A stretch of 64,000 nt of DNA, taken from positions 107,632,001 through 107,696,000 of the forward strand of contig NC_042998.1 of NCBI RefSeq assembly GCF_006345805.1. Direction: 5' to 3'. The notes under the pieces were generated by a model. It saw nothing but the letters and a program-made list of their open reading frames with translations. It had not been told where the DNA came from and ran no database searches. Source of the stretch: Octopus sinensis (taxonomy: Eukaryota). The translations under genes and the position numbers were made by a program. Below are positions 51,201 to 61,825 of this stretch, in pieces; within the stretch, counting starts at the first letter, position 1, and each line of letters begins with the position of its first letter.

Positions 51201-54200
51201 GGGATTTGTGATTTGTCTGCCTTCCTACTTACTTAGACTTTGGTTTTTGTTAGTTTAACTCTAAGACCTTTTGATTCTAGACTTTGCTTCCATACCTGAA
51301 ACTTCTTCTCAAGTTTGGGTAGTGGTTCAGCTATAGGAACAAGGTCATCAGCATAGAGAAGCTCTCAGGGGCAGCCTGTTTTAAATTCTTCTGTTATTGC
51401 CTAGAGGACTATGATAAACAAGAGGGGGCTGAGGACCAATCCTTGGTGAACCCCTACTTGTACCTTGAATTCTTTGCTGTACTCATCACCAATCCTCACC
51501 TTACTGATAGTGTTCCTGTACATGGCTTGTACAGCTCTCACTAACCACTCATCTATCCCTAGTTTCTGCATTGACCATCAGATAAGGGACTGGGGGACCC
51601 TGTCAAAGGCTTTCTCTAAGTCATGTATAGAGGTTTATCTTTTGCTATGTATTTCTCCTGCAGTTGCCTTACCAGGTATATATATATATATATATATCCT
51701 GTCTGTAACAGTAGAACTGATACTGGTGCTGGTGCCACATAAAAAGCATCCAGTACACTCAGTGGAATGGTTAGCATTAGGAAGGGCATCCAGCGTTAGA
51801 AACCGAGAACAGACAATGGAGCCTGGTGCAGGCCCTGGCTTTACCAGCTCCAGTCAAACAATCCAAAGCATGCCAGCATGGAAAATGAATATTAAATGAT
51901 GATGATGACATATATATATGAGAAGACTCATCAAGCCAAGTGAAATTGTTGTTGTGGCCATTGTTGGTGTCATGTAAATGGCACCTGTGAAATCATAATT
52001 GTGGCTGTTGCCAGTAGCATGATCTTCAAATGTTGGGCTTTATGGAGGTAATGACAAGTGACTGAGACCTTGGAGATATGCTGTGTTTGAGAAGATTCAT
52101 CAAGCCAAGTGAGACCATAGTTGTAGCTGTTGCCAGTGTTATGTAAAAGGCACCTGTGAAATGGTAATTATGGTCGTTGCTGGTGTCACATAAATGGCAT
52201 CTGTGCTGGTGGCATGTAAAAAGTACTCATTACACTCTTGGAGTGGTTGGCACTAGGAAGGGCATCAAGCTGTAGAAACCATGCCAAATCAGACTGGAAC
52301 CTGGTGCAACTCTCCAGCTTACCAGTTTTAGTCAAGCATGATGATGATGATGATGATGATATATATATTTATCAAATTACCTCTCCTCCATCAATATATG
52401 TCTCCCCTTCCCCCTGTGCACTATGTCTGTCCCATACTCTTACAACCTACACAACCATGTCATCTCCTTTTCACTCTTTTGTCCATCTTTTCTCTTTTCT
52501 TTCCCTGTACTACTACTAGTACTACTACTACTCAGTCAAAGGGGATCTTAGTCTTGAAGGCTGCATAGTGACCTCACTAATGCTGGCACACACACACAAA
52601 AGAAAAGAGCACCCAGAACATGCTGAAAGTGTTTGGCATTAGGAAGGGTATCCAGCTGTTGAAAAAATGCCAAAGTAGATATTAGAGTGTGATGTAGCTG
52701 GATTCTGTCAAGTCATCCACCCCATGCAAGTATGGAACATGAACATGAAATGATAATGATATACACAGTCACACACACACACACACACATATTGCATTGT
52801 TATTTACTTACAGTTGAAGTTCAGCTAAAGAGACAATCTCTAGTAATTTTCCTGCCAAAATATTGCCAAACTTGAAACCAGCAGAGATAAAATATCCTCT
52901 TAAAATATAGTAAGTATCCGGTTTAAGGAGTGTCACTGTTCGAAACACAGATTTAACGTTCCGAGCAGAGTACCAGTTTGATTCCTCAGAGAATGCTGCG
53001 GTCATAAAGAAAGCAGTTCTTGGATTCACTTTATATGTCTACAAGAAAATCAGTGAAAGGGAGAATGTAAAACTTTGGAGATGGAAAAATGGCAGCAACA
53101 GCCATGGCAATGATGAGATTACACACACACATACACACACAGGTACCTTGTATATCAATCTTGAATGAAAATGAAAATAATAGCAGAATGAAATATTTGA
53201 AATTATGAAAATTAAAAAAAAAAACTATGACAATAATTCTCTTTATTCACAACTAGTTTATAGGCAGAAACATTAATCAAATTGTTTATTTCTCATATTT
53301 TTCTTCAAATTGGAATACGGAAGAGATAGACAGAATATCATTTCAGAAATTACAAGATGTAGTTGAAAGAATGTTTTCCAACCTTAAAATTTATAATAAT
53401 AATAATAATAATAATAATAATAATAACAATAATAATAAGGGCCCCATCTGCAAAGTCATGCACTGTTTATTTTGATATGAGATCACCATGTTGCACACAT
53501 ATGGTTGTGATGCATGTGCCTGGTGTACCCTTATCAGACAGGTAGTCATGATGGGTATACTGGGCTTCGTATATTTTACCCCAGTGTCACTTTGATGACA
53601 TGCACTGCTCTCTCACTCAATAATAATAATAATAATCCTTTCTACTAAAGGCACAAGGCCTGCAATTTTGTGGGAGGGATCTAGTCAATTACATCAATCC
53701 CAGTACTCCATTGGTACTTAATTTATAGACCCCGAAAGGATGAAAGGCAAAGTCGACTTCAGTTGAATTTGAACTCAGAATGTAAAGTTAGAAGAAATGC
53801 TACTAAGCATTTTGTCTGGTATGGTAATGATTCTGCTAGCTCACCAGTAATAATAATAATAATAACAGCAGCAGCAGCAGCAACAACAACATTAGCAGCA
53901 GCAGCAGCAACAACAACATTAGCAGCAGCAGCAGCACCACCACCACCACCACCACCACCACTGATATAACAGTATAGTATCTTGGGCACGAAACTACAGG
54001 TTAACCAAATTCTTAATGAATGAAATTTGGTGTAGAGAAACTGTACAAAAGACGACAGGATGTATACCTATGGTGGAGCAGTATGGCAGAACCAGCAGGT
54101 TCTTGTAGTATTTTATTCCATGTCACCTCTCTTTATGCCCAGTCAACTATACCTTTTGTCTGTGTAGGATCACAAAATACTAGGGTATATATAATAAACT

Positions 54201-61825: not shown

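Follow-up and report, generated by a model that had tools for sequence, protein, structure and literature searches.

DNAHX in Octopus: a probable ortholog of a known non-motile dynein heavy chain with a degenerate AAA1 site

The 64,000-nucleotide stretch of Octopus sinensis DNA analysed here (the window; NC_042998.1, positions 107,632,001 to 107,696,000) is spanned on its minus strand by the middle part of a dynein heavy-chain gene. We assign this gene, with a probability of roughly 87%, to the octopus ortholog of DNAHX, the window holding residues 1994-3218 of the protein; the non-motile pairing role that comes with this assignment is drawn from homology. DNAHX was described in 2025 from cryo-electron microscopy of sea-urchin sperm (Chai et al., bioRxiv 10.1101/2025.01.18.633724; PMC11785096), its type sequence being a 5272-residue protein of Lytechinus variegatus (XP_041462850) that is annotated as "DNAH8-like" (PMC11785096). 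According to its describers, it branches off the outer-arm alpha chain and occurs from sponges to frogs (PMC11785096); the range found here extends from placozoans and cnidarians to amphibians. No new kind of protein is revealed by the octopus gene. Its unusual points are the rate at which it has evolved in octopods and a decay of the AAA1 site that reaches the Walker A and Walker B residues kept by the type.

The exons were rebuilt using tblastn with three octopod heavy-chain models (Octopus vulgaris, Octopus bimaculoides and Argonauta hians), splice junctions being picked by score. These three models were also the only matches returned by a homolog search seeded with the exon encoding Walker A. 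Minus-strand stop-to-stop frames hold dynein-like peptides at the sites named in an earlier note on this DNA, and the rebuilt model comprises 28 exons running from 61825 to 188, a total of 3675 nt or 1225 codons without a stop. The earlier note had counted 1228 codons over 27 exons, which was nearly right; the frame is open and in phase as it said, and the splice sites are good, all acceptors being AG and all donors GT with the exception of one GC (exon 6). The spliced product matches residues 1994-3218 of the 5025-residue O. sinensis RefSeq protein XP_036354691.1 without a single difference, and represents the middle of the gene, from AAA1 to the start of AAA4. Pfam recognizes in it AAA_6 (AAA1, 1.7e-51), AAA_5, the dynein AAA lid, AAA_7 and the start of AAA_8. 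The upstream exon lies beyond 64000, outside the window, and past the window start the gene goes on with AAA4S and its pre-sensor-II insert (PS2i), the stalk, AAA5-6 and the C-terminal cap. On the sequence evidence we take the window gene to be intact, spliced and protein-coding.

The register of the ATPase motifs was fixed by phmmer alignment to human DNAH5 (8j07) and the Chlamydomonas outer-arm gamma chain (7kzm), by the Pfam AAA_6 model, and by a MAFFT alignment of 26 sequences. In AAA1, the canonical Walker A GPAGTGKT reads GTPDVGKK (60259-60236, minus strand, as are all positions of the gene), Walker B WGCFDEF reads WLCLADG (58556-58536), sensor I TMNP reads TAAF (53002-52991), and sensor II FGLR reads FTLS (49343-49332). 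These are the four losses claimed in the earlier note, which had placed Walker A exactly at 60236-60259, and all of them are borne out; the range it gave (52812-60420) covers exons 2-5 but leaves sensor II, in exon 6, just outside. A fifth loss was not listed there. Where DNAH5 has SPATVSR as the arginine finger of AAA2, the octopus protein has SPMTITK (35189-35169), with R changed to K. This finger completes the AAA1 site from the adjoining module, and AAA1 has therefore been dismantled from both sides. Replaced in all are the Walker A glycine and threonine, the Walker B Asp-Glu pair, the sensor I asparagine, the sensor II arginine and the AAA2 arginine finger. The P-loops of AAA2 (GPPGSGKT) and AAA3 (GPKGSGKT) are intact, AAA4 is without GK[ST], and the canonical Walker B DE is present in none of the AAA modules, AAA3 having FIEDIN at that position. 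Judged by these residues, the octopus AAA1 cannot be a normal ATPase.

Assignment to DNAHX begins with the homolog searches. When the O. bimaculoides ortholog was used as the query over the region homologous to the window, octopods scored 1741-2780 bits, and the next 12 proteins, from gastropod, bivalve, nemertean, echinoderm, octocoral and frog genomes, scored 583-776 bits at 29-33% identity. These proteins are 3322-5495 residues long (10 of the 12 exceed 5100), and the Pfam microtubule-binding stalk domain is found in none of them. Canonical dyneins reached at most 322 bits, the top ones being DNAH8-like and DNAH5. BLAST with the window product ranked the families in the same manner, with 677-749 bits for molluscan DNAHX and 310-377 for DNAH5/8. 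A search starting from the Asterias member recovered the 5272-residue L. variegatus protein XP_041462850.1, which is the DNAHX type sequence. Proteins of this type carry the NCBI names "DNAH8-like" or "DNAH5", and a large, misnamed octopus gene is now placed in its right family.

The same assignment emerges from a careful maximum-likelihood tree (56 sequences, 1183 columns, site-heterogeneous model), in which DNAHX and the octopods form one clade with 100/100 support. This clade is sister to DNAH5/8, again at 100/100, and the octopus gene falls outside the DNAH5/8 clade (100/99). The descent from the DNAH5/8 lineage that had been suspected from the wording of the sequence is thus upheld. DNAHX arose in early animals via duplication of an outer-arm alpha/gamma heavy chain (DNAH5/8).

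Several features are common to octopods and other DNAHX and are absent from DNAH5/8. A Ser-rich insert of about 19 residues follows the AAA2 P-loop, an acidic insert is located in CC1, a second CC1 insert of 11 residues precedes the microtubule-binding domain (MTBD), the N-terminus reads MDERHWW, and the AAA3 loop has the form GPxGxGKT. The PS2i insert of octopod AAA4S, which sits just past the window and is about 54 residues long, aligns with that of six other DNAHX, with the anchors PW[AT]G and NLPY[ST] conserved; it is absent in four out of four DNAH5/8 sequences. By alignment, DNAHX-type inserts also occur in the octopod stalk (CC1, CC2) and MTBD, and the Pfam MT domain (PF12777), which canonical dyneins match, has no match in the octopod or other DNAHX proteins. 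At 5025 residues in O. sinensis and 5020 in O. bimaculoides (X1), the full-length octopod proteins are at the low end for DNAHX, their disordered inserts being shorter. The octopus protein keeps the whole DNAHX layout of tail, linker, six AAA modules, PS2i, a stalk and MTBD broken by inserts, and a C-terminal cap, but none of its ATPase sites is canonical.

A second or better-conserved DNAHX copy was searched for in the O. sinensis genome and not found; the window locus is the only DNAHX-like one detected, and three canonical outer-arm alpha-like loci are located elsewhere, on contigs C18 and C9. An exhaustive HMMER search for squid, cuttlefish and Nautilus intermediates revealed no cluster between the octopods (1583 bits) and other DNAHX (at most 577 bits). 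The octopus gene, present in one copy, is the cephalopod ortholog of DNAHX, a non-motile heavy chain that is old among metazoans, and belongs to a family that was already known. It extends DNAHX to the cephalopods, which go unmentioned in the describing paper.

A motif table of 65 DNAHX sequences places the octopus AAA1 site in context. Almost none of them has kept the sensor II arginine, only two dendrobatid frogs reading FSLR, and the Walker A GKT is nearly universal. Walker B has DE in most broadcast-spawning invertebrates and DD in vertebrates and tunicates, and is destroyed in heterobranch snails and rotifers (GCLKDA in Lymnaea, GFLKGV in Physella, GIFNNI in rotifers). The arginine finger has been lost in heterobranchs, amphibians and rotifers, where it is replaced by S, K or N. 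Among the 65, the Walker A threonine and the Walker B acidic pair are both gone only in Octopus (GKK, LAD) and in bdelloid rotifers, namely Rotaria (GKK, FNN) and Adineta ricciae (GKM, FHN); Adineta steineri keeps GKT. The change of threonine to lysine in Rotaria parallels that in Octopus. Argonauta has the Walker A GMPGTGKT and LAE at Walker B, from which it follows that loss of the Walker B aspartate, sensor I and the arginine finger predates the split of Octopus and Argonauta, and that Walker A and the Walker B glutamate went later, on the Octopus side. The losses in snails, amphibians and bdelloid rotifers are events independent of that in Octopus. The AAA1 pocket of DNAHX has been dismantled several times, with Octopus and the bdelloid rotifers as the extremes.

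DNAHX was tied to external fertilisers by its describers (PMC11785096). We found it in pulmonate and caenogastropod snails, newts, salamanders, a caecilian and bdelloid rotifers. Those snails, newts, salamanders and the caecilian are not free spawners, bdelloid rotifers are asexual, and octopods are internal fertilisers. The tie to external fertilisation is therefore not strict, and looks loose.

In a working AAA1 site, the Walker A threonine and Walker B aspartate coordinate Mg, the Walker B glutamate activates water, and sensor I, sensor II and the arginine finger sense the gamma-phosphate. These residues being gone, no hydrolysis is to be expected at the octopus AAA1, and probably little or no binding of Mg-ATP. 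A protein with such motifs would be unable to run a mechanochemical cycle, and its AAA1 is probably unable to hold Mg-ATP at all. In the sea-urchin protein the AAA1 motifs are altered and ATP is held, with the motor fixed in its pre-powerstroke state (PMC11785096); in sperm it forms a phi-shaped heterodimer, "dynein-X", with another heavy chain (PMC11785096). By homology, octopus DNAHX would be a static, pre-powerstroke-shaped partner of a working axonemal heavy chain, the two forming the inhibited phi complex (dynein-X) during dynein delivery or assembly in the sperm flagellum. In octopods the shape would be held by the contact between the AAA4 insert and the C-terminal cap, instead of by bound nucleotide, and the lock would then not depend on ATP trapped in the site. 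The suggestion in the earlier note of a non-motor, scaffold-type role was broadly right, and such a role had already been proposed for DNAHX.

As one of the extreme cases, Octopus provides a natural experiment on the need for bound ATP in keeping the conformation locked. We tentatively put forward a wider scheme, against which the odds in our opinion still stand. Octopod DNAHX might be a nucleotide-free pseudo-motor with an empty pocket. If it still works in sperm-tail assembly, ATP at AAA1 would be dispensable and the contact of AAA4 insert and cap alone would hold the shape. With the independent decay of AAA1 in pulmonate snails, in salamanders and frogs and in bdelloid rotifers added, this would suggest an ATP lock that is kept only where DNAHX works in free-spawned sperm, and the burst of rate in octopods would reflect a new role connected with internal fertilisation.

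A number of points weigh against the assignment and the role given above. Support for the gene model consists in a match to RefSeq models, which is indirect as evidence of expression. The octopod stem measures 1.7 substitutions per site, compared to 0.18-0.38 in other molluscs from the same node, a difference of 5-10 times, and the amino-acid make-up of the octopod proteins is atypical; some relaxation of constraint has therefore taken place. With this long stem and make-up, the placement of octopods inside DNAHX (81/92) is less secure than their membership of it. The invariant Walker A lysine is retained in the octopus AAA1, so that some nucleotide binding stays possible. Finally, we infer that octopus AAA1 has lost nucleotide binding, that the motor is locked before the powerstroke and that it has a phi partner, and one sea-urchin preprint is the only experimental basis for these steps.

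The strongest of the alternatives, though an unlikely one, is that the gene is heading towards a pseudogene: the job of DNAHX would have been lost after the octopods changed their mode of reproduction, and the ruin of AAA1 and the divergence would both be products of relaxed selection. The long stem agrees with this, as does the even spread of the excess divergence over the whole protein and all its domains. Just 64% of the positions that are invariant in six other DNAHX are kept in octopus, and the reported link to external fertilisers would fit a family that is no longer required in animals with internal fertilisation. Against this stands the state of the gene itself. The frame is open without disruptions over 5020-5025 codons in O. 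bimaculoides and O. sinensis, which are 95.8% identical over 5020 residues, and the 4378-residue Argonauta model, with 59-64% identity to Octopus, is likewise open and undisrupted. In the window, the splice-site pairs are intact for 28 of 28 exons. When unconstrained substitution was simulated on the 1225 window codons (500 replicates), no frame was still open at the divergence of Argonauta (mean of 21 stops), and 26 of the 500 were open at that of O. bimaculoides; these codons are a quarter of the gene. Identity between Octopus and Argonauta is 71.4% in AAA1, the best-kept segment, and 71% in AAA4L, but 50% in the spacer between AAA1 and AAA2. This uneven conservation fits folded domains and reads as a pattern of constraint and not of drift. 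Many other internal fertilisers, moreover, keep DNAHX. The open frame, the simulation and the uneven identity agree with the earlier judgement that this is a protein-coding gene under selection. As far as comparison of the sequences goes, we regard the constraint on the octopod gene as real, yet clearly weaker or different.

The earlier note had favoured a separately derived, dead paralog. In its present form this would be an octopod-specific, independent duplicate of DNAH5/8, whose likeness to DNAHX is due to long-branch attraction, and we consider it very improbable. Both stems are long (1.29 for DNAHX, 1.7 for octopods), and a quick tree joined the octopods to the rotifers, the other long branch of DNAHX. 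The likeness of the AAA2 wording to DNAH5/8 is real as well: GKTTC is present, and NGDIVPM (NGDRIPM in DNAH5) is nearer to DNAH5 than to other DNAHX. In the careful tree, by contrast, octopods do not stand beside the family but inside bilaterian DNAHX, with ten other molluscs (81/92). Holding the octopods among the molluscs improves the log-likelihood by 18.4 units over the free quick tree (approximately unbiased (AU) test, p 0.959). Where quick trees grouped octopods with rotifers or made them basal in bilaterian DNAHX, we treat this as long-branch behaviour, overruled by the AU test and the careful tree. At least four inserts found only in DNAHX, with conserved anchors, together with MDERHWW and the AAA3 loop, are shared with octopods and all absent in DNAH5/8. 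The BLAST scores favour molluscan DNAHX over DNAH5/8 by the wide difference given above, and the canonical outer-arm alpha-like genes have three loci of their own in the genome. Nested in DNAHX at 100/100, sharing its defining inserts and present at a single locus, the octopus gene is neither separately derived nor new.

Vertebrate DNHD1 is an orphan chain which likewise has a degenerate AAA1, lacks the catalytic residues of Walker B and contains disordered inserts (PMC11785096). Orthology of the molluscan gene to DNHD1 is barely conceivable, and the earlier note, too, had leaned away from it: the homolog searches matched no DNHD1-named protein and no mammalian protein above the canonical dyneins (an indirect test, resting on search hits), the gene stands closest to DNAHX, followed by DNAH5/8, and the DNAHX authors report that the two families lack sequence homology and have their inserts at different sites (PMC11785096).

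In detail, the octopus DNAHX exons of the window are arranged as follows. Exon 1 (61714..61825) encodes residues 1-38 of the window product, the end of the linker and the start of AAA1. The AAA1 large domain with the degenerate Walker A is located on exon 2 (60224..60420), further AAA1 sequence on exon 3 (59680..59778), Walker B on exon 4 (58428..58565) and sensor I on exon 5 (52812..53038); exon 6 (49214..49371), which has the GC donor, encodes the small domain with sensor II. A Ser/Thr-rich spacer between AAA1 and AAA2 occupies exon 7 (47761..47900). It is followed by exon 8 (45845..46037) and by exon 9 (44825..45078), which holds the intact AAA2 Walker A (45064-45041) and then the DNAHX-specific Ser-rich insert. 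The Walker B position of AAA2 is on exon 10 (43993..44079), and its arginine-finger position on exon 11 (35166..35270). Exon 12 (34630..34713) and exon 13 (26339..26374, only 36 nt) precede the AAA lid, which is encoded by exons 14 (23404..23468) and 15 (21685..21891). After exons 16 (18967..19047) and 17 (17676..17742), AAA3 extends over exon 18 (17315..17429), with its intact Walker A at 17369-17346, exon 19 (16264..16362), exon 20 (13846..13946), with FIEDIN at 13905-13888, and exon 21 (13116..13256). Exons 22 (10501..10575), 23 (9355..9525), 24 (8361..8513) and 25 (6591..6698) lead to AAA4, which starts on exon 26 (4929..5095) and continues on exon 27 (2332..2518), where the P-loop position (2511-2482) is without GK[ST], as in all DNAHX, and exon 28 (188..295).

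Gene models of the other octopods are in part incomplete. The O. vulgaris GenBank model CAI9717935.1 skips exons 8 and 9, which are intact, and with them the AAA2 P-loop, and in that species the C-terminus of the gene has entries of its own, the two small proteins CAI9717936 and CAI9717937. In Argonauta, the model is missing a portion of the microtubule-binding region. Such gaps reflect fragmented annotation and not biology.

The introns contain several other elements. A complete-looking long terminal repeat (LTR) retroelement is located in intron 4 at 54219-58366 on the plus strand, antisense to the dynein gene. Its LTRs, of 255 nt each (54219-54473 and 58112-58366), are 99% identical, and its frames encode a gag zinc knuckle, aspartic protease, reverse transcriptase, RNase H and integrase. 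The insertion appears to be recent, and accounts for a GC-rich (0.54) stretch. Adjoining it in the same intron, at 53300-54000, are long microsatellites of AAT/ATT and similar types, which translate in every frame into runs of N, I, S and P. A Ty3/gypsy-type retroelement, also on the plus strand and antisense to the gene, occupies about 28600-33200 in intron 12 (GC 0.48-0.51), with reverse transcriptase (RT; 4.5e-32), RT-RNaseH, and the zinc-binding domain and core of integrase. In intron 5, short minus-strand frames at about 50500-51600 resemble, by eye, a fragment of a non-LTR reverse transcriptase of the long interspersed nuclear element type (YADDLV). A further GC-rich patch lies at 40-42 kb.

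Elsewhere in the assembly, compact dynein heavy-chain genes are found on small unplaced contigs (C9094, C10357, C12478, C12462, C8701, C6932, C8702 and C8595). One of these genes, DNAH6-like and nearly intronless, is on a 30-kb contig with a GC content of 0.45; another, DNAH5-like, has gaps of about 10-35 bases, mostly 20-35, between its coding blocks. Octopus loci, in contrast, span 64 kb per quarter gene. Our guess is that these contigs are probably DNA of another organism in the assembly, for instance a parasite of the renal sac.

Of the known heavy chains with a defective AAA1, DNHD1 is similar in kind. It is a vertebrate orphan needed for sperm flagella, and resembles the octopus protein in being a non-canonical chain whose AAA1 is without the Walker B catalytic residues and in its likely structural role in the assembly of the sperm axoneme. 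It represents an independent lineage with inserts reported at other sites, the comparison being an indirect one by description. Among solved structures, the best matches are DNAH5 (8j07, 6e-100) and the outer-arm gamma chain (7kzm, 4e-95), and the domain order is the same as in DNAH5, DNAH8 and the gamma chain. Identity to outer-arm alpha/gamma chains is 22-29% in the named domains, and 16-18% in the spacer between AAA1 and AAA2 and in the AAA4S/PS2i segment. The octopus protein differs from DNAH5/8 in that its AAA1 catalytic motifs are all replaced, it has extra inserts, and its stalk and MTBD are disrupted.

The closest parallel is the DNAHX type. Its reported inserts are in the stalk, the MTBD and AAA4S, the last being a pre-sensor-II insert of a beta-hairpin and a helix that binds the C-terminal cap (PMC11785096). 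The octopus protein is like it in its size of about 5000 residues, in having the same inserts (AAA2, PS2i, CC1, MTBD and CC2) and no Pfam MT domain, in the degenerate AAA4 P-loop and intact P-loops of AAA2 and AAA3, and in the loss of the sensor II arginine. It differs in length (5025 residues compared to 5240-5495), its disordered inserts being shorter, and in a branch that evolves 5-10 times faster than those of other molluscan DNAHX. The main difference is in AAA1. The type keeps GKT in Walker A and DE in Walker B, with ATP trapped, whereas octopus has GTPDVGKK and CLAD and is also without the sensor I asparagine and the AAA2 arginine finger, which makes an ATP-locked AAA1 unlikely in the octopus member of the family.

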